Positions 9,616 through 46,382 are shown, counted from the stretch's first letter. The stretch: DNA of 64,000 nt from Adineta vaga (GCA_021613535.1 CP075495.1:7192001-7256000), one strand, 5' to 3'. Notes: generated by a model not told the origin, from the sequence alone. Numbers and translations: made by a program.

Positions 9616-12600
9616 GATTTAATATGCTTCATTGAAATAGAATAAAGACAAATAATTTAATTGCAATGAATAAGATATGATACATAGAAATAATGATAAT
9701 TAGTATTGCCTATAGGCTATACAAAAAAGAAAAAAAAACAACACCAAAACTACTTTTGTCATAATTGTTTTGCATCATATCTCCCTCTTGTTCTGTTTCG
9801 TTAATTCTATTAACAAATTTAACATAGATTATTCAATAACTTACTCAACTAATTCTTTTAATACGTGATCGAACCATATGACGTCTGGATCTAGATGGCA
9901 GTAAAGAATGATTCACACGAACAATTAAATCTGAAAGTGAAAAAATGCAAGGCAATGTCAGTTGGAAGAAAAGGTTCTTTTTTCTCTCTCTTCTTTTTAG
10001 AAATAGACACACGCACACACACACACATTATATACACATGTAAGAAACAAGAAGGAAAGGAATTTTACTGCTACTACCACAACTGCCGCTAATGCTTATT
10101 AGTCGGCAAGGCACACAGCCACATGATTCTTTTCTCCTTCTTTCTTTTTCCTTTTTTTCTTATTCCATTGCGATTTTTTTCTTTGTCACTAACAGATCCT
10201 CTTCGGCAACTATGCATTCATATTGCATAGAATTGTGTAGCTCTTTCCGTGCCGTTCCGCTTCATTCTGAGGCTAGCACATAGAGGCCCGAAAAGAGAAC
10301 GTTTTTTACACAAAAAAAGAGAAAAAAAGGAGCAGGAAGAAGAAGAAGCAGAAACAGAAGAGACAAACTAGTATCGATAGTGTCGATGTGCTGTCGTCGA
10401 TCAAATGTCAAATGTTGCGAGAGAAGGAATAACGAAAGAGATTTACAGGAAAGACACTCATGAGAAATCTCGAAAGAAAAACTAATAGAAACAAAAAGAA
10501 TTCATATCTTGCTATAAATTAGAGTAATGATAGGTTCTTATCGTCTCTCATCGCACTGAAAACTCTTGAAATTCTGTTATCCTATTCATATTTATCTTCA
10601 CAGTAGATACTATCGGAGATCAAATATGTTCAAATAAAATTTTCATCTAATATTCTCGTCATTTTTTCCGTTAATCATTCATATAATTCATCGAAGTACT
10701 CAATTCAATCATTTTAGGACACCGACAATCAGAATTGATTAACTCGTACTTAAGTACATTCTATTTTGGTACATATGTCAACAGTATATCCATCATATCT
10801 GATGAGAAAAAACAACAACAAGAACAATTTCTCTTCGGCCAATATTTCTCAAATGTAATATCTGAAAAGAAAATAATCCGGTCAATTTTGTACAGAATAA
10901 TATTGTAAAATCAAAAAAAAAGGAACAAAGAAACGAGAAATCTGATCAATCGATCTACTATTTGATTTCCTACATCAAAGACATTATAACGTTCATTAAA
11001 TCTATAAATTAACATTTTTCCATCAACAATCATGCTCATTTTTCTTTTCTTGTTCTTTTTCTTTTCACTACTTTACATCTTTTGTTACAATTACAAAAAA
11101 AAGAGAAAAAGCCCGAGAAAGAACAATAAGAAAATCTATGAATGAACAAAAAAGAAAAAGGAAAAACGACATCGACAAGGAAATGAAAATAATCTTGATT
11201 TACTCGGCAATATCTCGTGATATTTATATAGACGAAAGAACAAACAATTCTAGATTCAATTCCATTCACAGATTATTGATTGGACAACGGAAGCTTATAC
11301 TAAAATCAAAAGTTTGAGCCAAAACTGAATAATTCAGAATGTCTTTGCTAACGATGTGTAGATGCTTTTTTGTCTCTTACTGAAGGGAATATAGTAAGAA
11401 AATATGGCTAGTTTATAAGGCAAATAGATCGATAGATGATTAGTATGCATGAAATATAAAATACACTAGAATGACAGGCAACAGACAATAATCCCACATG
11501 ATACATTTTTCCGATATGGTTTCTAATGTCTCTTTTCTTTCGAATAAAAATAATTTCAATCAGTTTTGTCAATCAAATCTGACTGATATTGACGTAGAAT
11601 ATGAAATATGACAAAGCAGTATGTAAATTTAATATCATAGAATAAATATCAATTAGTAAATAGCATAGAAGAAAGATAGTTCGTATTTTTAATAAACTTT
11701 TGTATATTTTCGCATAACTTTTAAGATCTGAATTTTTAAAAGTATGAAGTGCAAAAGTTTGTGTTTTTTTTCTTATCGAGCAAAATAACTTTTATTCTCA
11801 AGGTATTCCATAGACATTATTTTCAAATGGAATAATTTATACATTATTAGGTAAATCAAAAAATGTCGTTTCTATTCATCGGAGTATTTCTATGAAAGTT
11901 TATTTTATGATTAATAAAAAGAATAAGAACAAGAATACTAAATAATAATTTGTTAAAGAAAATTTCCATAATAATCAATGCCGGATATTGTCACAGGAAA
12001 CAAAAGTGGAGGAGATAGATTAATGATCAAAACAGACAACAAGAGGAAAAAAATTAATCGATATCTCGTTAGAACAAAGACTTTTCCTTATTAGTCATGT
12101 CTCTAACTTTTATCATTACCTACGATGAAATGTACGCAATTTTAACAAGTGTTACTTGATTAGTTTATATAAGAATAAAAAAGTGAGTAAATATTTTGAA
12201 AATTTTTTTGTGAATGAACGATTTAAGCCTTGATTTTAATCTGACGTAAGTGCATAATCGTATCACATTGTTGATTCGTTTAGTTCGTGATGAAGTAAAG
12301 ATGACATTTTATTTATATTTGAATGTGTAGAATAAGAAATACTTGAGGATGTCATTGTTTAAACTTAAAATTCTTGCAAATATAAAATTCTATTGATAAG
12401 TAGTATTATGTTTAAGTACTCTTTTAATGAAATAAATAAAAATGAAGAAGACTAGCGTGAAGTATCAATCGATATTAAATTTCGGAAAATTATTGCTGTA
12501 TTTTATAGATGAATATGAATTATATGAATTGTTAAAATTAAATGAAATTTCAAGAAATTAATTACAAAAAACGAAGTATTTATCATAGTAATTAGTTTAT

Positions 12601-13492
12601 CAGTGAAAGAAACATATCTCAAGGTTTCAACGATTTACCTTGAAAATGTCAACAATGTCTTCTGTCAGAAGATCATTGTCTATGAAATATCTTTCCTTGT
12701 GAAAGAAAAAACATAAGAAAAGGTCTTTGAGTAAATTTTTTCCATTTAGGTTATCAATTACAATTACCAAACTAAAAATTTCATTTTATGATTTTTCTAA
12801 AATATACGAATACTTTTTATATCTCTATGATTTAACAAGTCTCACACAATAGAACCTAAATCATGACTAATATTTGCTATTTCTATCATTAATAAATATG
12901 AAGATTCTATTTTGAGTAAAAATGTTATGGTAATATCAGTTCAAACTCACTTCCGAGTTAAATGCAGCATTATTGATTATGTCTCACAACTCTTTATTAA
13001 TATAATTAGCATCATTTAAATCCAGTATCAGATTATTTACGCTTTTTGAAAACAATTTTTATTTTTTACTAATTTTATTGAAAAATGACTGACATTTGTG
13101 TTCACTTTTTCTCTCACTTTACTTCAATAATGATACATACAAGAATATGAATTGAAGTTTAATGAAACTTGATTCTTATCCAATTTTTCTATCAAATCAT
13201 CTATTATGAATGAAATTACGAGTTTTTTAATGTAACTGTTAATTTTGATTCAGTACTATTATCGGAAACGAAGATATTTTTATATAGAGCATAATTCTAT
13301 CTTTCAAGGCAATACAAAATAGAAAATAATATATCAAACGACTGTAATCATCTTCGACGCACACTTAATATACAGAATATTTTCATGCAAGATCTGTCCT
13401 CCGTTTTTGCTCTTCGTTTTTACTACATAAATTTTTACTTTTAAACACTTGGTAGTTGTTCATTATTACTCATTTATTTTTGTCAACTAGAT

Positions 13493-14467
13493 ATGAATTC
13501 ACCAGCATTTATTATACTGTTTGGTCTTTTATGGATATGGATGAGATTAGTAGATGGCTTGTCCATTGCTAAAATTCTCAATGCGACTTAAGAAGGTATA
13601 GCATTCTCTAAAACGAATATAGTCAAATCAACTTCGTGTATGTGTTCGTGTATTGATCATCCACATTGTTTATCAATCAGTGTGACAACAATGTCCACCA
13701 GTTTTTATCAATGTCAATTATTTGCAACATATCCATCAAAAAGTTCTCAGTTATCTTCATCACTAGCATCATATGTAACTATCTTTGTTAATCGAACGAT
13801 GAGTTCCATTTATATGAATAATGGTACACGTTTATCAAATCCTACGAGTTTATTTTCTAATACTTCACGCCCATGGATACCTATTTTTAAACTATTTACC
13901 GGAAACAATCAATTGTTTTTAGGATTGAATTCCAGTTATTTAACTACATTAACAGCAATACCAACTATTTCAATCCATCAAATAGCACCACATTGGTATA
14001 ATGTTTTACTTTCTCAATGGAATCAAAATTTATACATACCCAATCAATTAGCAATTGCTTTTATCATTAATCGTGTAACTATTATTGATTTTTTAGTTTT
14101 CAATAGTACATTATCAACTACGAGTACTTGGTTTAATATATTACGTTTAATTTCTAATCAATATTGGTCCATAAGTCAATATTCTTCTACATCAATTGGT
14201 CAAACACAAATGACATCAATTTATCAAGATAATGATTGTATAAGATCATTGAATTGTAATTTTAAATATTCCAATAGCGGATGTACACTCGATTTTTATG
14301 GATACTTTTTTATTTACGGTGGTTATAAAGATCTATGTATTGCTGCTGTTAGAAATATATCCAAAGTATCGGTGCCATCGATTTTCTATAGTCCTACAAT
14401 TAATTATACGAATGGAAAACTTGATTATTTCAATATTAGTGATGGTATTATGGGATTTGTTCGTTAA
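13493..14467 (+). pseudogene. Secreted PAN/Apple-like-domain protein with an invertebrate-type C-terminal domain; in-frame TAA at codon 33
   Basis: ATG 13493 gives signal peptide MNSPAFIILFGLLWIWMRLVDG. TAA at 13589-13591 is followed by the same frame running into the 275-aa ORF (CMCSCIDHPHCLSISV...CQLF). No intron is evident. Confidence 0.6.
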
Positions 14468-15651
14468 AAATCTACATACGTGAATATATATATATATATA
14501 CATATATCTAATGTTCTAATTCTTATCATGTACAAATAAATTTATCTAAGGATCAACGATATTCTCTTTAATAAGTTTGTCAGTTCTTGCCAAATTCTAA
14601 TGGCAAATTTTCAGTCGAAAGATATCAAAAAGTAGTTTATCAAAGTATCTGTCATAGTATTCTGCGATTAATGTCACATTTTGTAGATTGACGTTTCATC
14701 TTTGAATTGAATAAAGAAAACAAGATCATGATTATACATAATTGATCAAAAGAATTTAAAAAAATGACTTGTTGTTTTTACAAGTTCATGCTATTTGAGA
14801 TATAAGTAGTAAATGAATATACAACTACAGTTGCAATAAAACAATATCGAAGAATTTCCTCTTTTTTTGTATACCGTCTCAGCTGTATATTTTCAGTACT
14901 AACTGTTCGTGTATCTACTAGATATAAGAATTTCTCAAGTATAGCCAAACTTGTAGAAAGTATTTCAGAATAATATCGAGTTCAGCAATACGTTTGATGT
15001 TGTCTCGTTCTAAACTTATATTGCTGCTGAAGAGGGAAAACGATTGATTCAAATCACAATCTTTTAAGACAAATATAATAATCGATTTACCAATAGTTTG
15101 TCAATCATATAATCGAGAAAATAAAAATCATTATTTGAATAGAAACAAACTATTCGCATTTCTTCAATTTGTATTGTTTTATCGACTTTATATTAGATGC
15201 TAAATTGTTGAAATCACTTAACAATGAAAATTGTTTTTTTTTGTCAATAGTTCATTTCCTTCAAGAATGTTCCTGTTCATTCTCTTCCTTTCATTGGAAT
15301 CAATTTGTCAGAAAAAAGATTTTATACTTTATTTTATTCTCACCAAATAATGAATCTCTTAAGAATAAAGTGAGAAATAGTTTAGTTAATGACATTTGGT
15401 TTTTTTTCCTCTGGTGAAAGTTTTAAACTAAGAAATTTTCTCATCTTCTTTGAATCCAAGCGACATCTGCCTTTAAAAATCATATCATTGATTGATATTT
15501 CCAGCTGTTACAGTTGTTTATTGTTTTTTGTTTCATTCTCTATCTTTTCTTGTTTTAAAATATCAAATTACCTCGACTAATTCTTTTTATTTGATTTTCT
15601 TTGTTTACATTTATATCTATTTTTAAACAACAGAATTACTTCTAGATTATC

Positions 15652-17359
15652 ATGAATTCATTGATTAGCAATATTCCACGTCTAGGCGAAACAAAGACTA
15701 AACCAAAAATAGGTGAAATACGTTTAACTACCGATGGAAAACGACGGAAAATATTCGATGGTAATTGTTGGCAATATCTGTGTGCAGGCGATATTAATTG
15801 TCGAATTCAATCAAAACTTACATGTCGACTACATAAAAATAGCATTTCGACAAGTCCATCACTAGATAAATTATCAGCAAATAAAATCGATCAACTTAAA
15901 TTAGGTGATATGCAAATATTACCGAATGGAAATCGACAGATATGGCGAGGTACTCGATGGTATAATCTATGTCAAGCAAAGAATTGTTCCGTACAAGCTA
16001 AAGAATTTTGTAAAACACATCAAAATCAACGAATATCATTGCCAAATACAAGTATATAAATTTTCTAAGATTCAATTTTCTTGCTTGTAATGATGAATTC
16101 TTTGATTCTTTTTCGAAACTCTAGATGGATCTATTACTGAAAAATTTCGATTAACCGCTCGTACACGATCATGTACACTTACTACTGAAAAATCAGGTAT
16201 GTGAAGTCATTTTTATTTAGATATTGATTCAATGAATCTGTTCTATGTAGAAAAAAAAGAACATGAAGCTATACAATCATCAGATGATACAATTTCTTCC
16301 GAAGTACTGACTAACAAACGTGTTCGATCTTATGAAAATCTTGCTGAAACAACCAACACTACCGAAACAACAACAACAACAACAACACCATTGGAAAAAC
16401 CTGAAGTACATACACGTAATGGTCGTCGTGTACGATGTAATGGTTCAATTTGGAAACATCTATGTGCTGATAAAAAGAATGTTTTGTACAAACGTAAATA
16501 TACGCGTCACAGTATGCCTACGAAAAAAGCTGATCTAATCGATGAAACTAATCCTGAAGAGTCTGTTACAACAGAATTATTACCGTCAGATACAACTGAT
16601 TCAACAGTAAAAACTAGTCCAATTCCACAATCAGATAAGAGTAAAAAACGAAAACTAACCGATGATATTAACGTGAGAGAACATATTGTTCCAAAACGAT
16701 CAAGTCATGCTCAAAAACAAAAAGGTAAGCAACAAAAGAATAGTCTAGGATCTATTATGTTCTATTTGTTTTCAAGATTCTGAAAAACCAATTATTTTAC
16801 ATATTGAACCAAATTCTTCCAGTGCATCAGTAAGTTATCATTATCACTTGTTTTTATGTTTACTTAATTACTAAATGAACTTTTTCTTTCAGATTTTTGA
16901 TAGTCCTACAAAGGATCAATCACTTGATGAACCTGTTTTAGATGATCCGGAGATTTCATTTGCATTAAAACCTAATCGACTCAATACAACTTTTCAATCG
17001 ATTGAAATTCCTGTTCAACCACCAGTACCATTCAATTATGATTCTTCACCGGCATCAATTCTTGAACAATTCGGAACAATTATAAAGAAAGAAGCAGTAG
17101 TTGTAAGTTATTGACCATTGCAAAATCATTCGTTCATTGACCTAATATGCGTTTGTTTACATAGGAAGAAGAATCTTTAATTTGTGTGCCAACAACATAT
17201 ACAAATGGTACTGAATCATCTGCATGTGAAACGTTACAAGACTTTTTACGTGCTGAAGAAATGAAAACCAAGGAATTTAAACTCGATTGTCAACGTATTA
17301 GTTACCGTTTAGCTAAAATTCACGATTGTATTGGTAGTATTTCATCGCTAACTAGTTGA
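15652..17359 (+). CDS. Cluster gene A: two intact and one decayed Capicua-N1-like CCCH modules, ~6 exons
   Basis: Modules GEIRLTTDGKRRKIFDGNCWQYLCAGDINCRIQSKLTCRLH, GDMQILPNGNRQIWRGTRWYNLCQAKNCSVQAKEFCKTH and RNGRRVRCNGSIWKHLC. Exons ~15652-16051, 16125-16196, 16251-16723, 16777-16829, 16893-17102, 17165-17359. Confidence 0.75.
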
Positions 17360-17665
17360 ACCCCATCAAGCAATCAAACCCGTCTCCTAATTCTTATACC
17401 AATTTGTAAATTTCCAATTCGCAAAAAAAAACTCTCAATGGCTTCAATCAGATAAATACAGAATTCAATTGTTAACTCTTGTTTGTTTTGTTTCGTTTCG
17501 TTTCGTAAAGGGAAAAAGAAATGATGATTGTAAGTTTGTATTGTTCATTCATACATTTCGTTTAACATATTCCTGTACTATGTGAATAATTAAAATCACC
17601 TTGAAAAGAAAAAAAGAACCTTGTCTGATTTCTTTGTTTTCCTCTTATTTAAGATTAATTCTATC

Positions 17666-19325
17666 ATGTCAACGAAATCCAACGATATTAATGATAAGAA
17701 TTTATTAATCACATCTATTAAACTTGAAAATGATACAGATGATGATTTATCACATGATGAATCGTCAGATATTCCTAATCAAAAAGATTATTTTTCCAAT
17801 CTATCTTCAACATCTACAGCAAATCTTGCATCTTTATCATCAGCTTATAAAGGAAAAATTGAAGTTACAAGTAAAGGACGTCGGAAAATTTTTGATGGAG
17901 TTCGATGGCAGATTTTATGTCGAAGACCAGGTTTGACTTTTTATCTATTCAAGAATATCAGACATTTTTTTGGAATAGTTGTCTTAACATTTTCTACTAT
18001 TATCTAGTAATAAGATGAAGTATAGTGAATATGATTACTATTTCGTTTTCATACAGCTACTTACTCATATCTTTTCATAAAATTGTTTATATCTCGAAAT
18101 ATTTGAAAAGAAAAATGTAATTAAGTCTTCAAAATTTTGTCATAAATATCTAGAATAAAAATGATTGTCTTTGCAGAATGCCGAAAACAAACAAATAAAA
18201 AATCACTTTGTATAACACATTACAAAGAAGAATATGAGTTACCAAACGATCGATCACCATCATCTTGGTCAAATAAGTTTTCATCATTTCAAGTTCCATG
18301 TTATCGACAGCAACATTTATTTAATACTACATTAACTCAAAATGATATCGAAGATCAAAATAATACAATAAGCACAACAAATATTACTGATAATAACGAA
18401 CAATTATCATTAAATTCTAGTCCTAATCGATCAATCAACGAAGATCAAATCGAATATTTCGATAATGGTCGACGTACTATATTAAAGAATAAACGATGGC
18501 AATCATTATGTAAATATGATCATACTTGTCGAAATATTGCTAAATTTGATTCATTATGTATAAAACATTTTGAAATAACTCAACAAAAACGACGAAATCT
18601 TTTAAAATTTCATAATCCTGATAAACCATATTTACATTCCACTTTGTTTGATAAATATCGATCAGTTTTTACCAATGATCTCGCTAAACGTCTGAAATTG
18701 AGCAATGGTAAATTATCTTCTAAACTCTTCATTCTTGTTAAAAGATCTCAATAATTTCCTTTTAGAGATTCAAAGATCATCTTCTTCCATTATCGAACAA
18801 TTTGATATAAATAGTAATGAAAATATTTACACGGTATTTAGATTAAATTATCATTTTTCCTTGATTTCTATTCTTCTGATTCTTTGTTTTAGTCAACTAA
18901 ATTAGTCGAAAACAATTCTCGTCCATTAACAACTGAACTTACCGGTAATAAAACATTAACATCTTCAAAAACAAATCTACAGATCGGTTTATCAAAATCT
19001 TCATTGGTAAGACAAATTGATTTGATTCAAAAGCTACTATGTGTATTATTTCTAGTTTAAAAAACAAAAAACTGATTATCAAACAGATCAATCCGTCCAA
19101 ACTGATTTAAGCATTCCATTATGTTGTCAAATTCATCATGATGATCATCATTCATTCTATTCGATATGTAAAGATAACGTAAGAGAAGAAAAACAAGATA
19201 TTCAAACAGGAAATCATTATTTTTCTTTTTTGAAATAGCAATCAACATCATCGATGTTAAGTATGAATACCAAATCCGAACCGTTATGTTTTGATTCAAA
19301 TATATCCACATCCGAACTTCAATGA
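17666..19325 (+). CDS. Cluster gene B: two Capicua-N1-like CCCH modules, ~6 exons
   Basis: Modules GKIEVTSKGRRKIFDGVRWQILCRRP|ECRKQTNKKSLCITH (split by intron ~17931-18177) and IEYFDNGRRTILKNKRWQSLCKYDHTCRNIAKFDSLCIKH. The 3' exons were joined by hand to TGA 19323-19325. Confidence 0.72.
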
Positions 19326-19690
19326 AATTCTTTTCAGTCATAGCTTGAACAATCTTCAGTAGATTTTTTTTCTTATTTTTTACTGATAATAGTAGTTATT
19401 GCTTTCTATATTGATTGTATTTTTTAGTATTGTATTGAAAATTTTTCTTGTTTTAAATATTAATTGATAACAGAGATATGAAATAGAAGTGATGATTTTT
19501 TTTCCGATGACGAATGAGATATTTTTTCTTCTGTTCGAACTATAGTTGTTTTATTGTCTCAAATTATGTCGTTTTTTTAGTTTAAATAGAAAATAAATAT
19601 AAATGTGTATGCATGTATCTGATTGTCTTATGAATTGAATTTATTACACGATATATTTAATTCTTAATATTTAAGGAACAACGAAAAATG

Positions 19691-20371
19691 TTATGAAGAA
19701 ATTCCATATAAATTCGTGGAATCAAGAAGATCATAGATACTACTATAATCAGATTCATCGATTTCATGTTTTTCTAATTCTTCACTTTCTTTCAATATAC
19801 CTAATATCCATCTACGTTTGAAAATAATTTTGCCAAGATGATCACATCCTTCTGGCAACATAGAATTCTTCGGCACCAATACATGTCTACCATATTTTCG
19901 CATTGAATCTACTGCTTTTAATCCATCATATGGATGAATAATTATATCATCGGATGTTTCCTTCGTATGACGTCGATAATATTTCGTATGCCATATTTCA
20001 TTAATTTCACGAAGAATTTCTAAGCCATGTAATTGACCTTCTTGCCAATATCGTTCTAAATAATAAACAGATGAACTAGGTCCACCCACACGATGATATG
20101 TTTGTGAACATTCTTCTAAACCATGACGCTCAAGATGTTTAACATTGCCAATAACAGTAACACGCACGTCAAAATTCCACATGATAAATCGATAATTCCA
20201 TATTGATATTTTACGTACAAAACGTGTTTTCATCATTAATTTCAAACGTCGAGCTTCGTTTAACCATTGACGATTAACCAATGATTGTGATAGATAATCT
20301 TTTGGTGTTTGACAATGTAACAAAATCAAGCGAATGGCTTCGTGAGGTAATTCAATATAATTTGATGACAT
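19691..20371 (-). CDS. Intronless F-box-like protein with MORN-variant (YwqK-like) motifs
   Basis: 226-aa ORF. The N-terminus LPHEAIRLILLHCQTPKDYLSQSLVNRQWL fits an F-box pattern, and RHGLEEC and YWQEGQLHGLE fit MORN-2-like repeats. Confidence 0.65.
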   Translation of the reverse strand: MSSNYIELPHEAIRLILLHCQTPKDYLSQSLVNRQWLNEARRLKLMMKTRFVRKISIWNYRFIMWNFDVRVTVIGNVKHLERHGLEECSQTYHRVGGPSSSVYYLERYWQEGQLHGLEILREINEIWHTKYYRRHTKETSDDIIIHPYDGLKAVDSMRKYGRHVLVPKNSMLPEGCDHLGKIIFKRRWILGILKESEELEKHEIDESDYSSIYDLLDSTNLYGISS

Positions 20372-21045
20372 TTGTAAATATGAACTTTTCTTGCCTACGG
20401 AGAAATTTTACATCATCGTATGTCGAAATAAAAGGAGTATGGACTTCTTTTTCTCATTCGATAATAAAAAAAAGAAAGCGAAAGAAAAGAAAAGGTAGAA
20501 ATTGAAGGCAATCAACTGAAAATAGAATGTTTATCTGTCAAGATCGTGTTTTATGAAATATTTCAATAAATTGTATAAATAAAAGATCATTTCTATTATT
20601 CAGATAACAATATAAAAAGAAAGCATGTCTAATACGATTACTGGAAATTACATTCACTTTTTTCAGAATGAATACAATGAAGCAAATCAAAGATCAAATA
20701 AAAGATTCTTTTTGAAATAATAATATAAAATTCTCTTCTTTAGAAAATATCACTAAATCTTCTGTCTGATGATAAGCATATTTGTATATGTTCAACCAAA
20801 TGATTTATAAAATTCTCCAAAAATATATTGACGAAATCATTTATGTCTAAAATTCAAAACAATAGATGTCGTCATTGATTTATAACACCCTTAGTATATA
20901 ATTAGATTCTATTGGTCCAAAGTTATCTAACCGTTCGATCTAATAGTAAAGAGATAGATAGAAGTTACTTATTTGTCAACAAAGGTTTGAAGGGTGTCGT
21001 ATTGTATGCTTTCAATAATGAAATCATGTTTTGTTTTAGATAACA

Positions 21046-24000
21046 ATGGATTCAGATTTTGATGATGAAGATGTTCGTTCATTATCTGAACGTGTTTTAC
21101 CAATAATATCGATATCATCTACAAATTATACATCTTCTTCTCGTGATATTAATCATTCAGTGAAACCACAACCTAGTACTCTATGTGATAAACAATCATT
21201 CCAAGAAATTTTATCTAAGCCCGGAAATATAGGTGATATAATTCAATTAAGTGATGGTACAAGAAAAAAGTTTAATGGTTCAACTTGGCGTCGTATGTGT
21301 TCGGAACCTGATTGTTCGTATTATACTCAGAGAGAAGGTTTATGTAAACCACATTTAGCTACATTGAAAAAACGAAAATTATCTTCCATAACGAAAGATA
21401 ACTTAAAAGATGATGATGATAATTTATTATCTGAAGATCAAATTACAACTAACGAAGAACAACACACTAAAGATTCACTCTTAACATTAGCGAATAGTAC
21501 ACAAAAACCATCTCAACGTATTTGTGCTGATCCAACGTGTTCAACAATAGTTGATGAGGGACATGAATATCAAAATGGGTTTGTTGAAAATAAAACCTAT
21601 CATCTGATAGTTTATTTATGAATTTTAGTTTATGTCCACATCATTATGATGAATTTTGTGCTAGAAATTTAGCAGCAACAGATTCATCTTCAGATACATT
21701 TACGTTTTCAACTTCATTGCGTAAACGTCGACATCCAGATCCACCTTCACAAGTACCGGTACTTTATGATATTCAATCATCAATTACAAAAACAACTCAT
21801 CGTCTTTCAATAGCTGCTATTCCGCCATCTGTAGATATTAATAATCCGAGAAAAGGTGATATTATTGAAATGGTAAATGGTTCACGTAAAAAATTTGATG
21901 GAGTTATTTGGCGTAAAATTTGTTCCGTACCTGGCTGTTTGATTGCTTCACAACGTAATGAATTATGTCGAAAACATATATCTAAATTAGACGACAATTC
22001 TAATGATGTGTCAAGTACAGATCTGGTTGGATTAATGGCAATGATGACATCAACATCGAAACGTATTCCATCGACATCAACATCATCATCGACAGATGAA
22101 AAAATAGGTAGGAATAACACATAATAACGTTTTTCTAATTCTTTTCACAATCTATATTTTTAGAAACTCGTATCTCAACTAATATCAAAGAAGAACTCAT
22201 GGATGATAATAGTACACAAGATGAGTGCAATAATGATAACATATCATATAGTCATCCAAAATCAGGTAGATAATGGCACATTGTTTTTCTTTTCTTTATC
22301 TTTTCTTCGACAAATTTCAGATGACGACGACAATGATGATGAGGAGGAGGAGGATGATGATGATGAAAGTACGGGAAAACCGAATGGCCATCATCAAGAA
22401 AAACTTTCTACAATCGATGAAGATAATTTCGATGCTTCAACTGATCATAGAACATCTACGAATCGACAAAAATTCTCAACAAGTAAATACAATTGATTCT
22501 TGATCTGTGATTAATTTATATAAAATTTCGCTATAGATTCGTTAAAGAAATGGTTACGAGAGCATCGAAATAATCCATATCCAACTAATCAAGAAAAGAT
22601 TAATTTAGCTAAACAATCATCAATGACATCTGATCAAATAACTTTGTGGTTTAATAATGCACGAGCTATTGTTCGACGAACTCATCCAAAATCACGACAT
22701 TCATCGAATACTACTAAAAATAATGATAATACTGAAGTAATGTCTAAAAATGAAGCATATTCAAGTTCAACTACGAAAATTCCTTCGGAAGGTAAAATAA
22801 AATAGGAAATGCTTTTACAATGTGAAAAAGGTAATAACAATGATATGTTTAGTCTATCGATCATTTCCATTATATAATGATATAAATTCACGTTCAATTG
22901 GTGTACAATGTAATCCATCAACAACGAATGAAATAACATCAACCGACTTTTCTCATATGACTGATGAAGAACTAGCATCTGATCGTACAATAAAAATTCT
23001 AACTCCATCACAGCATGTTTTAAAAGCAGTCAATAGTATACAATGCAAAAATGCTAATGATTTGTTAGTAGACAATATTAAACTTGAAAATGATGCAGAT
23101 ATGAAGAAAGAAAAAGAAATCATTCTTTCAAGCACTTGTCTTGATGATGATCAAATGGTAAAAATCTTTTATATTTCTAACACTTATTGTAGTTATTGAG
23201 GATATTTTTTCAAGAATCATATTCGTATTGCATACATTTTGAAGGAGTGGTAGACATAATTTTATCTTTCCTTTAAAACTCTCAACCTCTGAGTTCTTGT
23301 CACCTATGGTTCATTCTGATCTTTTAATTCTCTTACGGTTCACCGATCAAAGTGTAAGCGACAGAAAATAACATAGATAACAAGCAATATTAGAGCTTTA
23401 ATTTCCAGGTCATCTAAATTTAGCTTCAAAAAAGATTTATATAAAATTACATGACCCGGAAAGGAAAAAAATAATTTATTTGAGTCTGACATTCATGGAA
23501 CAATTTAAAAATAGAAGAATATTGCTGACACAAATTTCTTTAATCTTCTATATTTAGACTCGTCTTAATAATTTTTGTACAAGATTTAACATTAAATCAT
23601 CCAATATTGTTGATAAATATACCACACATTTAATTACTGACGAAGAAGGTGAAACACTTGTTTGTCCTTTATCAAAAAAAGTTATTCAAGCAATTGCTTA
23701 TCATATGCATATTTTAACTTATCGTTGGATTGATACGTGTTTAAAAATGAATCAAATTATTCATGAAAAACCCTATGAAATTCAAGGTGATCTAACACTT
23801 TCACCTGATCATCATGGTATGAATAATGATCTTGTTTTTTCTTTCGTTAACACACAATCCTATTTATTAAGGTATGCAACGAAGTCGACAAAGTATTTTA
23901 CCCTATAATCTTCCTAAAACATACTTACTGGAAAATTATTCTATTATGTTAAAATGTGATGGTTGTCAAGGTATGATGAACAATGATGAATTAATCGAAC

Positions 24001-24286
24001 TAGTGAAATTATGTGGAGCAAAATATACAACAGATTCGCATTTTTCACGTTTTCAATCAGGTATTATTCGTGTTGTTCTTTGTGAAAAAGAATATTTAAT
24101 TAATCGAAAAGAAGTCTATGAAAAATGTGTTCAAGCTGGCGTACATTTTGTTACACCGGAATGGTAGCGAATAGAAAAATATTTTCATTCGTATTATCTA
24201 ACATCTTCTTCTATTTATTTAGGTTTCTCGAATCTTTAGTTCACTATTGTATTCAACCATTTCAAGAATATGAAATAACACCATAA
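21046..24286 (+). CDS. Cluster gene C: 2x Capicua-N1-like zinc-finger module + TALE homeodomain + BRCA1-type tandem BRCT; ~9 exons
   Basis: Modules GDIIQLSDGTRKKFNGSTWRRMCSEPDCSYYTQREGLCKPH and GDIIEMVNGSRKKFDGVIWRKICSVPGCLIASQRNELCRKH. Homeodomain LKKWLREHRNNPYPTNQEKINLAKQSSMTSDQITLWFNNAR. BRCT TTHLITD..VCPLSKKVIQAIA..YRWIDTCL..YEIQGD..HHG / ELVKLCGA..VTPEWFLESL. Exons ~21046-21578, 21629-22107, 22164-22265, 22321-22481, 22537-22791, 22853-23157, 23558-23816, 23872-24163, 24223-24286. Confidence 0.82.
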
Positions 24287-24501
24287 AGAGAACAACACGA
24301 ATTTCATTCATTTTATTGGTCAGATTTTGCTTTCATGCATATAGAAAACAATTGTTTTTATAATCTTTTTTTTATTGTTTTTCTTTCAACAACAAAAAGA
24401 AATAACCGAAACCAAACTTAATTATTGTAGTGATCATTTATCTACGATTCTTTTATGTACATATACATTTAGTTAAAGTTTTGTATGATTTCTATCTTCA
24501 G

Positions 24502-27057
24502 ATGTTAGATAAAATGACAAAATATAAAACTAATCAACATGATGGACAACACGTGAAAAAACATTTGAAATCACAAAAGAAAAAAACAAGTATATCAACA
24601 CTTTAACATTAACATTAGCTTCTTTTTTTTAGTCAAATATAGATCGTATCCTAGAGCGTTTCATTTCTATTCTTTGTCTGTTATATAGACATGTTATTAA
24701 ATCTCTAAGAATACACTTTATAATTAAAATGAACAACTTACTTTCATCGTTGAACATTGCAAATGAGATATTTCTTAGTTCTCGTTAGGTTCAGTACCTA
24801 GGAATGTTATTTAATCTGTCCTTATTAAGAGAATCTCTAATTATTTAATCTTTAAATCAGAAACAAAACAAGGATACTTCTTATCTAATTGTTTCTTTTA
24901 AACCTAGATTTTGTCTTTTTGAAAATCTCTAGCGAGTTAATTCTCATCATTAGTATTATCAGGAATGAAAACATTCTCCAGTCTATATTTAGGTCATCAT
25001 TCTTCAGTAGATTCAGATGACAGTTCGATTGAATTAACTAAAGAACAAGTGAAAGCAGCTTTAACATCTCTCATACCAATTGATAAACAAAATCGAACAG
25101 TTGCCTCTCGTAAACGACGTCGAAAACAATCTATTCATCAATCAATAGAACCTGTAAATAAAAAACATAAACAAATCTATCATGATATCATTTTATCAAA
25201 TACTAATCAATCAGAAACCATGGTTCTTGCTGCAAGTAACTTAAATCATCATCAAATGGTTTGTTTTTTTTTCCTTTAAATTTTCTTATTGAATTCTTTT
25301 CTTATGAATTCTTTAGAAGCAAATGAAAAAATTTGTTCTACTTTTTAATTGTCGTTTATTATTATTAGAAAATTCAACAACATTTAATCCTACAATTACA
25401 CATTTAATTACAGACGAAATTGAACCAAATGATTCTTTAATATGTACATTAACTAAAACGGTTCTTTTCGCCATAGCTCAACATTGTTTTATTCTTTCTT
25501 ATCGATGGATTAGTGAATGTTTAAAACAAAATATGATTATCAATGAAGAACAATATGAAATTGAAGGTGATCATATATTTGCAACAAAACATAATGGACC
25601 ACGTCGATCACGTTTATCGAAACGACCTCTATTGCCATTGAATCATTTTAGTAAGAAATCAATAAGTTACAAAACAGTAAATATTCCTTTTTTATTTTTG
25701 TCTCTTTTAGTTATGATCAAAGGCGATAGTCAACATTTGTTAGAATTAACAAATACAGAATTAGGTGATTTGGCATGGTTAGCTGGAGGAATTTATATTG
25801 AACAGAATCGTTTTCCAAATACAGTTTTTCCTCGACAATGTTTTCTATTAATTGAAGATGGAGATATACGAAACAAAGTAGGGAGAAACATTTAATTTTA
25901 TACAATTAGAAAAAAAAATGTCAGTAGGACAAGATCAAAGACAACTTAATTGTATCGAATTCAAAAGAAATTTGTGTCTAGTAATAAACTGGATGGAAAC
26001 GCTTGATTAGAATCTCTAGTATGCTCTTTATTATTTCGTACAAAGTCATAAGAACAAATAAGCATTTAGTTCCTGGGTAAAATTTTGTTTTTTTCCCATT
26101 TTCAATTGTATTCACTCGATTGCAAGTACACAGTAATTATAAATATTCTAGGAATATTTTGTATGAAGAGATTCTTTTATCAATGATGATTACCTCATTA
26201 TAATGAGCATCAAACTTTTTCCTGTAGCTATTTTCGGATTGTCTATACCATTCAATTCATTAGTTTGTTACTTTTTTTAATAATTACCGAGTACGTTTAT
26301 TATTTGAAAACCTTTTAGCTTCTTTCTTCTTTGAGAATTTCACCCTCGAGAGATAGAGTTATGCAGCGAAAGTTAGAGAGCATAGTCCATAGAGGAGTGA
26401 AGCAGTATAAAAAAATGATCGATAAGTCAGCGTTGTTTATACAATCAAATAGGGTCATCCGTTACTTTTCATGAAAAGTACGAAGAAAGATTTTGCTTCG
26501 TTATTGAAGCGAATCATCATCGATCACGTTCTTTACTCAAAACGAAATATTTACTCATCTCATTTTCCCACTTGCCAAATACGCCAATTGAGTCAAAATC
26601 AAGGTTGAGTTGAAAGAACAGTCACAGGTGTTTTGTTTTTGTGAGTAATTTTAATTATACCAAATAATTTTCGAAATAAATCTTATTTCCATTGATTATG
26701 AGATTAATTCTTCGATCTGCATTTTACCAAAATACTCTATGTATCTTGTTTTATGTGTGAAAAAAAAGAACAATCCTTGGGGGTTTACAGATTTACTAGA
26801 AGAGAACTTGACATGTAAATCCTGATAGAAATCTTCTTTTTGTCTTCTAATTTTCGAGTGTAACGTGTTTTTTGATCGTTTTATATTATATAATCACTAT
26901 ATTTCTCTTCATTTAGAATATGTTTCATCGTTGTATAGATAAAGGTTTGAAATTTCTTCGAAGTGAATGGCTTATTCGTTCCATTGTAGAATATCGTATG
27001 GCCGATATTGTTCAATACCATTGTGATCCATTTGATACCATTGATCGATCTGAATAG
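24502..27057 (+). CDS. Cluster gene D: BRCA1/BARD1-type tandem-BRCT-only protein with a basic NLS; 5 exons
   Basis: Exons ~24502-24589, 24993-25258 (RKRRRK; MVLAASNLNHHQM), 25317-25650 (ITHLITD..ICTLTKTVLFAIA..YRWISECL..YEIEGD..HNGPRRSR), 25711-25877 and 26917-27057 (FLRSEWLIRSIVEY). The first exon is less certain. Confidence 0.75.
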
Positions 27058-28938
27058 ATCGATAAGTTATAATTATTATTTTTTTTTCATTCTAAATGTA
27101 AATATTTCTTGTGTTGCTAATAATCCGGTGAACATGTTTCTAGTTAGTCAGATAGATAACATACAAAACAAAGAAGATTTGATCTATTTTTTTCTCTTTC
27201 ACTTTCTTTCTCGTTTTTCATAATACTATTTTTGTTGAACACTATTACTTGTTGCTGTTTGTTTGTTTTTTGCTAGATGTTTCTAAATAAATAAAGATAT
27301 TTTTCATTTCTAGATATATTTTTGTGTGTAAAAATTTCTTTGATTTATTATTTAGATAAACCGATTTACACTTTGTTTTCTGATCGAAAGATTACGCACA
27401 TATGCTCATCATCAATAAACAACAGAAACTCTTTTAAGGTTAGAGCATTATTTTTGTCATTTTTACCGTTATTCTCTGTTTTTCTGCTTATTCTTTAGAA
27501 TTCTTTAGTCTGTGCATACGCCCTCGCTGCTTCGCTCTTAGCTTGTCTGAAGTTTTTCATCGACATGATTTCCTTCTTTTGACGAGTTCGGAAATCTAGC
27601 GGTGCTCTTTTTAGTCTCCATGTGTATGTTGAATGGAAAGCAAGACAAGAAAAGAAAAGCAAAGCAAAAGGAGAGAAAGAAAAGAAAAAATGAAGAAAGA
27701 AACGAATGTAGACAAGTCGACAAACAGACAGTAGAGAACCTAAAAGGAAAAAAAAGAAAGAAAAAGAAAGTAACGAAAAAAGAAATTTTGACCTCATTCT
27801 TCATGCTTTTTTTTCTTCTCTCTCTTACAATTTATAAGAACGAACTTCGACTCTTATCAGTTCGTATGTTGTTTGAGTGTAATAGATTTCTATTGTTTAA
27901 ACAAAAAATCCATATACTTATTTAGAAATAAATAATAAGTACCGATTGATTAGAAGAGCAAGCTTAAATATATTTCTTTCTATTTTTTTTCCTTTTTTTT
28001 GTATGTGTATGTGTTCGATACCAGAGAAAAAAACAACTAGTACTCTCTTTTCTTTCTTATTCTTTCGTATTAGACAGATACATTTTAAGTTAAAGAATAT
28101 AATAATAAGTGAGTAGAAATAAGAAAAGAAAAATGTGTTGTCTTCAATAGCATATTAGAAAGAAATTAATAAGTTCGTAAGAAAAAGAAATGTATACATT
28201 TTTTTGAATACAAATTCTTCCTATTGAAGAGAGATCAGGTGAGACAATTATTCTTTTATATTATACGTCTGGTGTTTTTCTTTTGGTAAAACTAATATGA
28301 AAAAAAACGAGAAAAAAACTAAGAAGAAACAGAATAGAAGAAGAAAAAAATTCATTCATACTTACATATTAGGTATCTATTGGATGGAAACTGACAGACG
28401 TTCTTTGTTCTGATTGACATACGGGTATACCCGATTTTACTTTTTTTATTAAGGGAATATGCTTTAGGTCTTAAGCTATTTTTACTTCTTTAGGTTTTTC
28501 TTATTTTTATGTTAAAGAAAACTTATTTACTTCCGAACATCTGTTTTCACGTTTCATACACTTACATTGGTTTTGTTAAATATCAAAAATAAATTGTTTA
28601 ATTTAATTAGTTCATATGACAAGAAAAAAGATCATTTTGCATTCCTAGGATTCTTTTATTAGAAGTCTATGTCTAGATATTTTGATGTTTTCTTTCTTTT
28701 TCTAGACTATACTCATAAGATAGTCAGTAATTTACTTTGAAAGGTTTGATGTGAGAAAAGTTGTAGAAGTAGGAAACATTTTATTTCATGTATTTTTTTA
28801 TCATGCTTTTATAGTTAAGAACATTCAACTCAAGTTTTACCAAGAATGCTATGTAGGCGAATAAAATGTTCATGCGTATATTAGGAGGTGTCATTTGATA
28901 TTCTTTATTTCCGTTTGTTATCATCACGCTACTATCGG

Positions 28939-29077
28939 TGACGTAAAAACTTAGAAAAGAAAAAGTTTGATTTATTATTATTATTATTATTACGACACCG
29001 GGAAAGACAACGGAAAAAATGCCACCTATTTCCTATTTACTTGACACGTTTAGCTTCTTTATCGTTGAGTGACGTCT
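28939..29077 (+). promoter_or_regulatory. Two near-consensus CRE sites upstream of SIK
   Basis: TGACGTAA at 28939-28946 and TGACGTCT at 29070-29077, each 7/8 to TGACGTCA, 290-430 bp before the SIK ATG. Confidence 0.4.
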
Positions 29078-29365
29078 TCATCAGCGGTTTACGTCCATTC
29101 GCCCTCATGGAATTCTATACGCAAATAAACACAAAAAACTCCATATTAAAAACCTACGATATCTCATGTACAACTACTTTATTTTCTTCTTCTTCTTCTT
29201 ATTCATCAACAGTTTTGTTTTGACTAAAAAACATTCACCTTCTCTTTTCTCTTCTCTTGAAATACACATGTACATTTGAAATAAAGTTTGTTTCGAATAT
29301 GTCACAGAATGTACAACACTATGACATGTTTCATGCATTTTCATTTTTGTTAAATTTTACTTTAG

Positions 29366-33434
<4,069 letters not shown>

Positions 33435-34223
33435 CTGCTCAACATTTGCCTATCCCAACGACGACTTCTTCTTACGTACCCTGATCTGATGAATCTTATT
33501 TGTTTATGTAAATATACATATTTCAAGTATTTCTTTTCTCGCCGGTGATCTTCTTTGATAGTGAATTGTTCTCTTCTTCTTCTTCTTCTTCTTTTAGTCG
33601 TAGCAAATAAAAAGATAATATTTTTGTAGATAATTCTCTTACGGTGAAAGAGTATCATTCACATAAAACTAAATACATATATATTTTCCTTATTCTTATT
33701 GTACAGTTTTTTTCCTCCTTTTTTTCCGTTGGTTTGTATTTTCAATGTTAGTCTGCACAAGCAGTTCAAAAAAAAAGCGTGTTTATATTCATATATTTGC
33801 GTTTCATGTAACCGGTTTCGTTTGTTTATTTGTTTTCTTTTCTTGTTTTTCAAGTAACATTGTATTTCGATTCTTACATTCTTTTTTTCCCTTTCTTTTT
33901 TGAAACAGTTCATTCATGTGCTTCGTTGACTGTATAGACATGGAAAAAAAGAATCTTTTTTCGAACTTCGAAAGAGAAACAAATAGAGTTATAATGAAAG
34001 TGAAAGAAAAAAAGAATAATATCATTCTCTTGGAAAAAACCATTCATGCTGACTCATCTCTTTCTTATTCGTTTACAAGTTTTGTTTTATGTCGTTCTCC
34101 ATGTGCAAACACCTGATTCGCTCACGAATATATTGAATGACTGACTTTGTTTTTATCGAAAAAGACACTTTGTCCGAGAAGAGAAATATCAAATTTCTAT
34201 TTTTCTAGATTTATATCGTTGAC

Positions 34224-35449: not shown

Positions 35450-35972
35450 CTGATAAAAATCATTTTCATTTGTTTTCTAATATTTTTGCAAAATCTTTTT
35501 TTTTCCTTCATCAGAAGTTTTCTATTCATCATGTATTATATTTTTCTCCTTCTCCTGTATTCTTATAATTTATTTTGGATACTGTATGATAATATTCTTC
35601 TCTTTTTTTCTCTTCGAACAAAAAGAATATATACGAGAACTCGGTGTGATAACATTACCAAATTTTCGAATTCATTGTTTTATGTCTATTAACTAATTTC
35701 AAATGAAAAATAATAAAAATGAAATAGATTATTTTTGCTAATCAATTATAATTCAGATCTAGACGTTTGCATTTATTCATTAACCTCTCGAAAGGGTTTA
35801 TAGCGCGATCATCATGTGGCGTCCTCTTATGAACGTCTAATATACTGGTGAAAAGATAATTTCAAAGTAAAACGATCTACCCATTACTTTCGATCTGTTC
35901 GTTCATTCATTGTTATTTTCATTTATTCAGCTAGTTGTCTCTAATATTCATTCTAAATTGATTGCAACTCAA

Positions 35973-40791: not shown

Positions 40792-41155
40792 GTTAGTACA
40801 TTAGATTTGCTAAGCTCTGAACGCTCTGAAATAATTCTGTTTAGTTTTTATTCATTATCTAATTCAATTTTTGTTTTTCTTCTAGTTCAACCCAATCAAA
40901 CAACATAAATTCTTATTCAATGTTTATTGTTTTATTTGAAAACTTTATTCTTTCACACTTCATCTTTTTTCTTCAAATATTTGTGCATGTTTGATTACAA
41001 AAGAAGAAGAAAATTGACAGACAGACAGACCAACAAGAAAAAGAAGGAGATAAAACGCAGTTCTGTGTATATTTTGTAAAGAACATAGTGTATTTCTTCT
41101 GTTCTCATTATGTAATGGTTTATATAAGAAAAATAAAAAATATCAATTATTTGTC

Positions 41156-46324: not shown

Positions 46325-46382
46325 TTTTTCAAGTGATAAACTTAAAATAACGTTTCAATAACTACTACCATTTGCAATTCTG

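Follow-up and report, generated by a model that had tools for sequence, protein, structure and literature searches.

A conserved bdelloid gene block in Adineta vaga combining Capicua N1-type modules, a TALE homeodomain and BRCA1-type BRCT pairs

Bdelloid rotifers survive massive DNA breakage, yet to our knowledge the route from damage signalling to gene expression in these animals is not understood. A locus on chromosome 2 of Adineta vaga may bear on this question. Within the window, the whole 64-kb stretch of DNA analysed here, four genes on the same strand (A to D) were described as sharing out one set of parts: Capicua (Cic) N1-like modules, a homeodomain and BRCT repeats. That preliminary description proposed that local duplication with fission or fusion had built a system of one full-length regulator and truncated partners. 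Do the four genes form such a system, or are they members of something larger that happen to be neighbours? Gene models and domain searches bear out the shared parts, and the locus is laid out as follows.

15652-17359, plus strand: gene A, 6 exons, 467 aa; N1-like modules only and a conserved C-terminal helix region
17360-17665, plus strand: A-B spacer, 306 nt; blocks conserved with Rotaria (by eye and blastn)
17666-19238, plus strand: gene B, 5 exons, 386 aa; two N1-like modules
19691-20371, minus strand: single-exon gene, 226 aa, conserved; convergent with B and divergent from C
21046-24286, plus strand: gene C, 9 exons, 816 aa; N1 modules, TALE homeodomain and BRCA1-type BRCT pair
24287-24501, plus strand: C-D spacer, 215 nt; 3' part conserved in Rotaria
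24502-27057, plus strand: gene D, 5 exons, 341 aa; basic N-terminus and BRCT pair only

The ATG of A lies at 15652 and the stop codon of D ends at 27057. All introns of the four genes are GT-AG and 49-73 nt long, except for longer ones noted singly below. The spacer lengths given in the preliminary description, 306 and 215 nt, hold, along with all of its coordinates. Absent from it was the minus-strand gene, which sits between B and C and interrupts the run of four genes, leaving A-B and C-D as two separate pairs. This gene is unrelated to A-D and stands outside their shared domain set although it lies inside the cluster. It has zero Pfam matches; an F-box label, which looked plausible by eye, was dropped because Pfam gives it no support. 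Identity to its Rotaria counterpart is 65%, with a dN/dS of 0.35. Searches throughout used single exons or database proteins as queries. We reject the reading of A-B or C-D as one mis-split gene each, since stop codons, separate orthologous predictions and cDNA-like contigs that hold A only and carry 3' UTRs speak against it.

Genes A and B were modelled by hand.

15652-16051, 16125-16196, 16251-16724, 16777-16829, 16893-17102, 17165-17359, plus strand: exons of A
15736-15834, plus strand: A module 1, basic hairpin and C-C-C-H finger
15928-16020, plus strand: A module 2, full module
16421-16465, plus strand: A half module, hairpin and first Cys retained and the remaining finger gone; conserved in orthologues
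17666-17930, 18177-18707, 18766-18833, 18893-19006, 19056-19238, plus strand: exons of B
17876-18220, plus strand: B module 1, interrupted by a 246-nt intron (17931-18176)
18467-18568, plus strand: B module 2, full module

The model of A is identical to the NCBI A. vaga protein I4U23_007996 and is collinear end to end with its Rotaria orthologues; it holds two full modules and one conserved hairpin-only half module. B aligns over its full length with A. ricciae P0027 at 67% identity. Splicing out the 246-nt intron rebuilds B module 1, the protein sequence of which is identical in the aligned B orthologues of other bdelloids. In Pfam, A, B and their orthologues match nothing above threshold; the only match, Zf_WRKY19, is below its cut-off.

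Gene C brings the modules together with two further domains, again in a hand model.

21046-21578, 21629-22107, 22164-22265, 22321-22482, 22537-22791, plus strand: exons 1-5 of C
22853-23157, 23558-23816, 23872-24163, 24223-24286, plus strand: exons 6-9 of C
21256-21354, plus strand: C module 1, full module
21523-21644, plus strand: C finger-only module without hairpin; intron 21579-21628 inside
21879-21977, plus strand: C module 3, full module
22461-22671, plus strand: TALE homeodomain with P-Y-P loop; intron 22483-22536 inside
23119-24283, plus strand: tandem BRCT, spread over 4 exons

This model, which includes one long intron of 400 nt, is identical to NCBI protein I4U23_007999. C contains two full modules, one finger-only module, a Homeobox_KN domain and a BRCT pair. 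The Homeobox_KN match (22551-22664) has an E-value of 1.9e-15 and 56.8 bits against a cut-off of 24. The best solved relatives of the homeodomain are PKNOX1, TGIF1, PBX1 and MEIS, the top matches are all TALE, and the P-Y-P three-residue loop insertion can be read directly from the sequence. Exon 7 scores 26.1 bits on Pfam BRCT (cut-off 21.3). The BRCT pair of the Rotaria C orthologue aligns with BRCA1 chains along some 200 residues (E 1e-15); microcephalin, the next family, follows at E 5e-5. In alignment, C and most of its paralogues keep the phosphate-pocket Ser/Thr of strand 1 and the Lys of helix 2. Among the relatives found, full-length C-type proteins occur in bdelloids only.

The name Cic-N1-like proved correct. 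Seven hairpin-bearing modules lie within 6.3 kb and none elsewhere in the 64-kb window; the whole 100.8-Mb A. vaga genome holds only about 23, so the clustering is far above chance. Profile-profile alignment confirms that the modules of A and B are homologous to those of C, as had been proposed. A profile of 11 rotifer modules matched 1723 proteins, and among these are single full-length matches (profile positions 2-48, E about 1e-14 to 1e-15) in proteins with DUF4819 and an HMG box, that is, true Capicua proteins. The joint consensus alignment of rotifer modules and Cic N1 has invariant G, R, W, C, C, C and H. An AlphaFold model of the module (pLDDT 93.3) shows three strands (7-9, 15-18, 23-26) and one helix (43-47). 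The N1 domain of Cic-L has been described with three strands, one helix and three close Cys (PMC9351367), and the predicted fold agrees with that description. Judged by profile similarity and predicted fold, the modules belong to the Capicua N1 domain family. When the module fold was compared with 48,161 solved chains, the best match reached Z 2.5; A20-type fingers align with the zinc half, at an insignificant Z of 2.3-2.4. With no solved relative of the fold, any binding of the modules to DNA or chromatin would be extrapolated from Drosophila Cic-L. HMG_box and DUF4819 gave no match in any exon of A, B or C or in full-length orthologues. By their domain content A, B and C do not qualify as Capicua orthologues, which would carry the HMG box, C1 and the Tudor-like domain. 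RING likewise gave no match, and the architecture of C (N1, homeodomain and BRCT) is not that of a BRCA1 orthologue.

How are the four genes related to each other? Aligned with hhalign, A and B match at 97% probability and E 1.2e-11 with both modules in order, and they also share a short motif downstream of the modules. The matches of A and B to C are weaker than this (1.6e-7 and 1.9e-7), and outside the modules no similarity of A or B to C was detectable. N1 genes on other chromosomes match A and B at least as well as C does, and A and B may therefore not derive from C. No further close paralogue of A or B was found in the A. vaga genome. As far as alignments can tell, origin by local duplication is well supported for A and B only.

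Gene D consists of the following parts.

24502-24589, 24963-25258, 25317-25650, 25711-25877, 26917-27057, plus strand: exons of D (hand model)
25220-27054, plus strand: tandem BRCT, containing a 1039-nt intron (25878-26916)

Two of its introns are long (373 nt and 1039 nt), and the first mini-exon, 24502-24589, is conserved in Rotaria. By blastp the BRCT pair of D aligns with that of C over 227 residues at E 2e-32, while on Pfam BRCT it reaches 17.7 bits, under the 21.3 cut-off. D and its orthologues retain the pocket Ser in alignment. The pocket Lys, present in 13 of 15 family members and in BRCA1, is T or N in the D orthologues of three species. A tree places D as sister to the C clade with support of 79/62 on a very long stem, and one of three BRCT-region intron positions is common to C and D. 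Descent of D from C is weakly supported, and the long stem may mislead the tree. Of the proposed local duplication with fission or fusion, the tandem kinship of A and B is well supported (E 1e-11, against 1e-7 to C), and the kinship of D with C is weakly so.

All four genes are under purifying selection. Estimated by a simple method at AT-rich, possibly saturated sites, dN/dS is 0.52 for A, 0.51 for B and 0.61 for C overall, values of 0.5-0.6 being high; all four genes are below 1, with bootstrap upper bounds below 0.75. In C, dN/dS is 0.22-0.37 in the domains and close to 1 in the linkers. Constraint is strongest in D, at 0.24 overall and 0.14 in its BRCT pair, which per exon shares 86-96% identity with Rotaria. 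We reject the reading of D as a decaying pseudogene, because it is the most conserved of A-D. The preliminary description had left room for neutral evolution of A, B or D, and dN/dS below 1 in all three speaks against it. None of the three grounds on which that description would have fallen was found, expression being assessed through orthologues of A and B.

The linkage expected in related species was found: A-D are linked in other bdelloid genera. The order A, B, minus-strand gene, C, D and a SIK3-like kinase is found again in Rotaria as well as in a further bdelloid contig. In Rotaria sp. Silwood1 all six are on one contig, in a Logan contig from ERR3089237 they lie within 10 kb, and in Rotaria sordida A, B and the minus-strand gene are together. 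Adjacency of C and D is also seen in two metagenome contigs and in A. ricciae. In Didymodactylos a D-like remnant with homeodomain and BRCT follows the C orthologue downstream (L047:7800-8480). However, synteny is just as good for the minus-strand gene, for the gene upstream and for the kinase downstream as it is for A-D. Because unrelated neighbours share it, the linkage is no argument for function. The ohnologous locus on chromosome 5 keeps only C'; remnants of A', B' and D' were searched for there and none were found. Genome-wide, N1 modules occur at at least 14 loci and BRCA1-type BRCT pairs at at least 16, and other combinations include homeodomain with BRCT, N1 with BRCT and tandem BRCT genes. 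Other tandem pairs are located on chromosome 1 (2.80 Mb) and chromosome 5 (13.33 Mb), and a true Cic-like N1 copy resides on chromosomes 1 and 4. The parts list of N1, homeodomain and BRCT is not private to the A-D cluster.

Features of the spacers raise the possibility of joint transcription. The same-strand spacers A-B and C-D measure 306 and 215 nt in A. vaga and 333 and 232 nt in Rotaria sp. Silwood1, and A-B is 327 nt in R. sordida; both contain conserved noncoding blocks. The splice-acceptor-like AG reported closely before each ATG is there, as a pyrimidine-rich tract and AG within 14 nt at all four starts, against 10.5% of all ATGs in the window. Rotaria retains the sites of A, B and D (that of D directly before the ATG) but not that of C. 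As for a spliced leader on the downstream mRNAs, such acceptor-like sites are what the sequence shows. An intronless, RNA-like contig, L049, joins the A and B orthologues. A GT-starting segment present in contig L050 is gone from L049, 7 nt before the B ATG, and from this comparison we predict a spacer intron at 17582-17653. L049 also merges the opposite-strand gene, and therefore it may be an assembly of overlapping RNAs and is no proof of a single RNA. In A. ricciae, C and D are run together in one gene model that resembles an annotation artefact; among 5.8 billion clusters no second C-D fusion protein was found, the A. ricciae cluster standing alone. Being short and conserved, the spacers hint at possible shared or read-through transcription within each pair, A with B and C with D.

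Could the cluster be a true multi-component system, with A-B and C-D co-transcribed in operon-like fashion, A and B competing at N1 sites and D competing for or bridging phospho-ligands, so that they act as adaptors or dominant negatives of C? The short same-strand spacers with their conserved blocks, the conserved pyrimidine-AG before the A, B and D ATGs, and a block kept since before the split of Adineta and Rotaria are all in its favour. The joining of A and B in L049, with the segment before the B ATG removed, would also fit, but the same contig merges the opposite-strand gene; likewise the fused A. ricciae model for C and D has no second instance. A minus-strand gene parts the two pairs, unrelated neighbours are as syntenic, and C' persists without A', B' or D', so C-type proteins need no adjacent partners. 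The altered pocket and long stem of D suggest a changed rather than a competing specificity. We consider this system unlikely.

It is equally improbable, in our estimation, that the arrangement is a historical accident, in which A-D belong independently to large dispersed families, became neighbours by ancient tandem duplication and serve unrelated functions today. The many N1 and BRCT-pair loci elsewhere, other tandem pairs included, would be expected from such a history, as would collinearity of the whole neighbourhood regardless of gene family and the lack of detectable likeness of A and B to C beyond the modules. Yet the noncoding blocks of both spacers are conserved, an RNA-like contig joins A and B, and the tight spacing is kept in every lineage sampled.

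Taken together, our results favour, with a probability of roughly 60%, the reading that A-D are an ancient, bdelloid-specific block of nuclear regulator genes and not a private, self-contained system. With the same confidence we place the block in a larger lineage-specific family that mixes Capicua-L N1-type zinc modules, a TALE homeodomain and BRCA1-type tandem BRCT. A and B would stem from an ancient tandem duplication of an N1-only gene with two modules. D may be an old truncated paralogue of a C-like gene with homeodomain and BRCT; after rapid divergence it would have been held nearly unchanged by strong constraint. C is a candidate sequence-specific transcription factor: its homeodomain would read DNA, its N1 modules would add chromatin or DNA contact, and its BRCT pair would read a phosphorylated partner. 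D would be a nuclear BRCT-only protein with the pocket Lys replaced, and because of that replacement it is likely either to bind another ligand or to act as a partner or competitor of C-type proteins. For A and B we propose a role as N1-only, chromatin-associated proteins resembling the HMG-less Proto-Cic forms; they may have N1 targets in common with C or compete with it there.

A bolder version can be drawn up, which we rate as less probable than any of the readings above. Here the block would act as a conserved regulatory unit, co-transcribed in part, through which phospho-signalling (for example after DNA breakage or desiccation) would reach transcription. C would read a phosphorylated partner through its BRCT pair and bind specific promoters through homeodomain and N1. 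The strongly constrained D, together with A and B, would tune C at these ligands and chromatin sites, either as competitors or as bridges; a bdelloid-specific expansion of homeodomain-BRCT transcription factors would then have its first example in the block. A family fusing a BRCA1-type phosphopeptide reader, a homeodomain and Capicua-type modules would be a direct candidate for the link from damage to expression, and it adds conserved truncated neighbours and the BRCT-pair loci genome-wide. All of the domains are already known and the functional unity of the cluster is unproven, which makes it a good lead and not a new principle.

The C-terminal tandem BRCT of BRCA1 is a reader of phospho-Ser-x-x-Phe. 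The rotifer proteins resemble it in that the best solved match spans both repeats and C keeps the pocket Ser/Thr and Lys. They differ in that C has no RING or other BRCA1 regions, the Lys is Thr or Asn in D, and the residue aligned to Arg1699 of BRCA1 is a different one in the rotifer pair, and therefore +3 specificity is probably different. C shares with PKNOX/MEIS, TGIF and PBX the three-residue P-Y-P loop extension, a Homeobox_KN match above cut-off and a W-F-x-N recognition helix. Unlike the MEIS and PBC factors it is without their partner domains, and its homeodomain could be placed in no TALE class. A full-text literature search on rotifer homeobox and BRCT returned no homeodomain-BRCT fusion, and literature searches on bdelloid or rotifer BRCT, homeobox-BRCT and spliced-leader operons yielded nothing on an N1/homeodomain/BRCT family.

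The finger half of the modules, C-x-C-x-C-x2-H, is like that of Zf_WRKY19 (PF24906), which gives sub-threshold matches in 6 of 11 modules, and the rotifer profile also matches proteins with 6-30 Zf_WRKY19-like repeats. However, these repeats are without the N-terminal basic hairpin, and all scores are below the curated cut-off. The closer likeness is to the N1 of Cic-L: a length of about 45 aa, a basic hairpin with three Cys and a His behind it, and 44-50% identity to the Cic N1 consensus. Unlike in Cic-L, the module comes in 2-3 copies per protein, without the Tudor-like domain (DUF4819), HMG box or C1, and in C it is fused to a homeodomain and BRCT pair. A and B bear N1 without an HMG box, as does Proto-Cic of sponge and placozoan (PMC9351367). 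After Proto-Cic they would be the second independent case of a Cic N1 module without that box, and as such they bear on the role of N1 itself.

Gene models for the block, built by hand from splice sites and open frames, place four plus-strand genes, A to D, in the window, with a further gene on the opposite strand between B and C:

15652-17359, + strand: gene A, 6 exons, 467 aa (hand model)
17666-19238, + strand: gene B, 5 exons, 386 aa (hand model)
19691-20371, - strand: single-exon gene, 226 aa
21046-24286, + strand: gene C, 9 exons, 816 aa (hand model)
24502-27057, + strand: gene D, 5 exons, 341 aa (hand model)

The models of A and C are the same, at every residue, as NCBI I4U23_007996 and I4U23_007999 (both 'hypothetical protein', Adineta vaga), and the B model can be aligned over its full length to an A. 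ricciae protein, 67% identical. The window, positions 7,192,001-7,256,000 of A. vaga chromosome 2, is ~29% G+C with short GT-AG introns; those of A-D measure 49-73 nt with four exceptions, one in B (246 nt), one in C (400 nt) and two in D (373 and 1039 nt). Splicing out the 246-nt intron restores a complete B module. The small first exon of D, which sets the C-D spacer, is kept in Rotaria at both the protein and the nucleotide level, as is the pyrimidine-AG immediately 5' of the D ATG. The last intron of D (25878-26916, 1039 nt) is very long for the A. vaga genome; that of Rotaria D is likewise long (1.9 kb), and its sequence content is not conserved.

What the preliminary description observed of the block is confirmed and sharpened, and its interpretation is supported in part. 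Its coordinates for the four genes and its spacers of 306 bp (A-B) and 215 bp (C-D) are exact, the domain content found matches its sharing-out of parts (modules only in A and B, all parts in C, the BRCT pair only in D), and the AG it saw before each ATG is a pyrimidine-AG at all four starts, compared with 10.5% of ATGs in the window. The 226-aa minus-strand gene was absent from its gene list. This gene has no Pfam match, is 65% identical in Rotaria with a dN/dS of 0.35, and is syntenic in Rotaria and in a Logan contig from a bdelloid (run ERR3089237).

Each module consists of a basic hairpin and a C-C-C-H finger. A carries two full modules plus a half module that is conserved, B carries two, and C carries two full modules and a finger-only one. 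Seven hairpin-bearing modules lie within 6.3 kb, with none elsewhere in the window and about 23 in the whole genome. A profile from an alignment of eleven A. vaga modules, searched against 1.84 billion representative proteins, gave 1723 protein matches of two kinds. One kind comprises many-repeat proteins matched over the finger half only, which is Zf_WRKY19-like, in agreement with sub-threshold Pfam matches of the modules. The other has a single whole-module match per protein at E about 1e-14 to 1e-15, and the sampled members are Capicua because they bear DUF4819 and an HMG box. When 56 sequences are aligned jointly, G, R, W, C, C, C and H are invariant, and the Capicua consensus is 44-50% identical to the rotifer modules. 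An AlphaFold model built on this alignment (pLDDT 93.3) shows three strands, with a helix at the C-terminal end; the N1 domain of Cic-L has likewise been described as three strands and a helix with 'three closely spaced cysteine residues' (PMC9351367). Taken together, the profile matches, the invariant residues and the fold make 'Cic-N1-like' the right domain assignment. Among solved structures, a fold search found none resembling the module (best Z 2.5). An ohnologous pair of sites on chromosome 4 (13467218-13467334) and chromosome 1 (1420963-1421079) encodes an N1 module that differs very little from the Capicua consensus, and these are likely the true A. vaga Cic-L orthologues.

C has a TALE-type homeodomain, scored by Homeobox_KN at 56.8 bits (cut-off 24). 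In Rotaria, the BRCT pair of the C orthologue aligns with the BRCA1 tandem BRCT over ~200 residues (E 1e-15), microcephalin being next at 5e-5. D has the BRCT pair only, which aligns to that of C over 227 residues (E 2e-32). In the BRCA1 tandem BRCT, a Ser/Thr and a Lys touch the phosphate. By alignment, both are retained in C-type proteins, and the Lys is kept in 13 of 15 members of the BRCT family; its position holds Thr or Asn in D and in the Rotaria and A. ricciae orthologues of D.

The first outcome that the preliminary description named as refuting it, unlinked genes in related species, is not what is observed: the genes are linked in relatives. One contig of Rotaria sp. Silwood1 has the order A, B, minus-strand gene, C, D, SIK3-like kinase; R. 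sordida has the same order in part, with the C orthologue on the same contig, and the ERR3089237 contig has the complete order inside 10 kb. C followed directly by D is also found on two metagenome contigs and in A. ricciae, where the annotation merges them into one 1091-aa model. The kinase downstream of D (29366-35453; UBA_SIK3 domain 31173-31655) is still present on chromosome 5, and in the ERR3089237 contig, as in Rotaria and Didymodactylos, it occupies the same place. Because unrelated neighbours are linked too, the linkage of A-D by itself is uninformative on function. Upstream of A lies another conserved plus-strand gene (13525-14471), a 275-aa open frame with no Pfam match and 75% nucleotide identity to a 325-aa Rotaria gene in the same position.

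Neutral evolution is seen in none of the four genes. Nei-Gojobori dN/dS against Rotaria is 0.52 for A, 0.51 for B (modules 0.26), 0.61 for C (N1 0.22, homeodomain 0.37, BRCT 0.26, linkers 1.08) and 0.24 for D (BRCT 0.14), all upper estimates since on AT-rich sequence this method is crude and probably underestimates dS; bootstrap upper bounds are below 0.75 for all four. D is the best conserved, with BRCT exons 86-96% identical between Adineta and Rotaria, and on this ground a reading of D as a remnant was rejected.

Local duplication with fission or fusion had been proposed as the origin of the block, and a local origin is well supported for A and B and weakly for D. Profile-profile alignment of orthologue sets matched A with B (probability 97%, E 1.2e-11, both modules in order), A with C (E 1.6e-7) and B with C (E 1.9e-7), always through the modules, so those of A and B are homologous to those of C. 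Downstream of a Ser run, A and B also have in common a short acidic-Gln-Phe motif, and no further close paralogue of either was found in the genome. A and B are most simply read as old tandem duplicates of a gene with two modules. A maximum-likelihood tree built from 21 BRCT pairs puts the D clade beside the clade of C, C' (the C-type gene on chromosome 5) and Didymodactylos with support no higher than 79/62; the stem of the D clade measures 1.55 changes per site, and its tips are very short. Of three BRCT-region introns, one coincides in position and phase between C and D. A Didymodactylos carnosus contig (CAJNOQ010000890.1) has uncalled fragments at 7806-8425, between its C orthologue and the kinase; they resemble the recognition helix of a homeodomain together with D-type BRCT repeats, and may be a D-like gene still with its homeodomain, or its remnant. 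They suggest, with moderate confidence, that D derives from a homeodomain-plus-BRCT duplicate whose front half was later lost.

On both flanks of the block, chromosome 5 (11.044-11.074 Mb) matches the gene order of the window, and of the block this ohnologue retains only C' (I4U23_025467); no counterpart or remnant of A, B, D, the minus-strand gene or the 13.5-14.5 kb gene was found there. In a full-length tree of C-type proteins, a C' group holds both Adineta and Rotaria sequences (support 99/99), and the copies neighbouring A, B and D form separate Adineta and Rotaria groups. Since the C' group spans both genera, the C and C' loci parted before the Adineta-Rotaria split, and by this tree a solitary C' has persisted since then without adjacent partners. 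Three window stretches (10421-20960, 24300-29340 and 35453-49752) are without counterpart on the otherwise collinear chromosome 5, a pattern of gene-by-gene fractionation.

Co-transcription was also considered. Three contigs from other samples (L049, L050 and L051) carry the A orthologue in one unbroken frame across all five intron positions, and therefore come from spliced RNA. L049 runs on through the spacer into an intronless B orthologue and then the opposite-strand gene. It equals L050 up to one spacer point, where L050 continues into a GT-starting segment and L049 jumps to 7 nt 5' of the B ATG; a spliced spacer intron would look like this, and its A. vaga equivalent, by position, would be 17582-17653. 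L049 is no proof of a single RNA: it merges the convergent gene too, so its assembler clearly joins overlapping transcripts. Both spacers (17360-17665 and 24287-24501) contain noncoding blocks conserved between Adineta and Rotaria, possibly UTR or processing signals. A T-rich/ATTCATACA-like element 3' of the A stop is also present in the three RNA-derived contigs. The pyrimidine-AG before the ATG is conserved for A, B and D; bdelloids use spliced-leader trans-splicing. For C and D, support for joint transcription is limited to the fused A. ricciae model, with no other C-D fusion found in the protein collection.

Searches of the 100.8-Mb assembly in six contigs gave 17 places with the D BRCT exon and 23 with the module profile. 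Other arrangements of the parts elsewhere in the genome are:

chromosome 2, 4.19 Mb; chromosome 5, 13.25 Mb: homeodomain-plus-BRCT genes
chromosome 2, 4.68 and 13.83 Mb; chromosome 1, 2.80 Mb: module < 1 kb from a BRCT pair
chromosome 1, 2.80 Mb; chromosome 5, 13.33 Mb: tandem BRCT-pair genes

Tandem duplication seems to be a usual growth mode of the family. Of the two tandem loci (chromosome 1, 2802986-2805657; chromosome 5, 13334288-13337414), whose pairs are BRCA1-type, one has an N1-like module between the pairs. One Didymodactylos protein combines four modules with a BRCT pair. The full-length relatives of C that were found are all bdelloid (Adineta, Rotaria, Didymodactylos and environmental contigs), and the A family was found only in Adineta, Rotaria and further samples. 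The block thus represents a local sample of a combinatorial, bdelloid-specific family. The domains themselves are known; the architecture of C and the family appear to be undescribed, no description having been found in the literature searched.

Beyond the anatomy, homologies, conservation and constraint documented here for A-D, we propose that C may act as a transcription factor in which the homeodomain would supply sequence specificity and the BRCT pair would tether it to a phosphorylated partner. Its N1 modules could give DNA or chromatin contact, by analogy with Drosophila Cic-L, whose N-terminus, of which N1 is part, needs no HMG box to bind chromatin (PMC9351367). A and B would be chromatin proteins with N1 as their sole domain type and conserved helices at the C-terminus, and D a nuclear protein with only the BRCT pair and with basic stretches near its N-terminus. 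The changed pocket of D and its long-stemmed, then frozen history suggest that its specificity is new and fixed and that it is not simply a competitor.

The module is common to Capicua and to A, B and C, whereas the HMG box and the Tudor-like domain belong to Capicua only; Pfam finds neither in A, B or C, which on domain content are not Capicua orthologues. The best solved relatives of the C homeodomain are PKNOX1, TGIF1, PBX1 and MEIS, and it is TALE-type like these factors, though not assigned to a class. By alignment, the C-type pairs have the pocket Ser/Thr and Lys of BRCA1, whereas D has Thr or Asn for the Lys.
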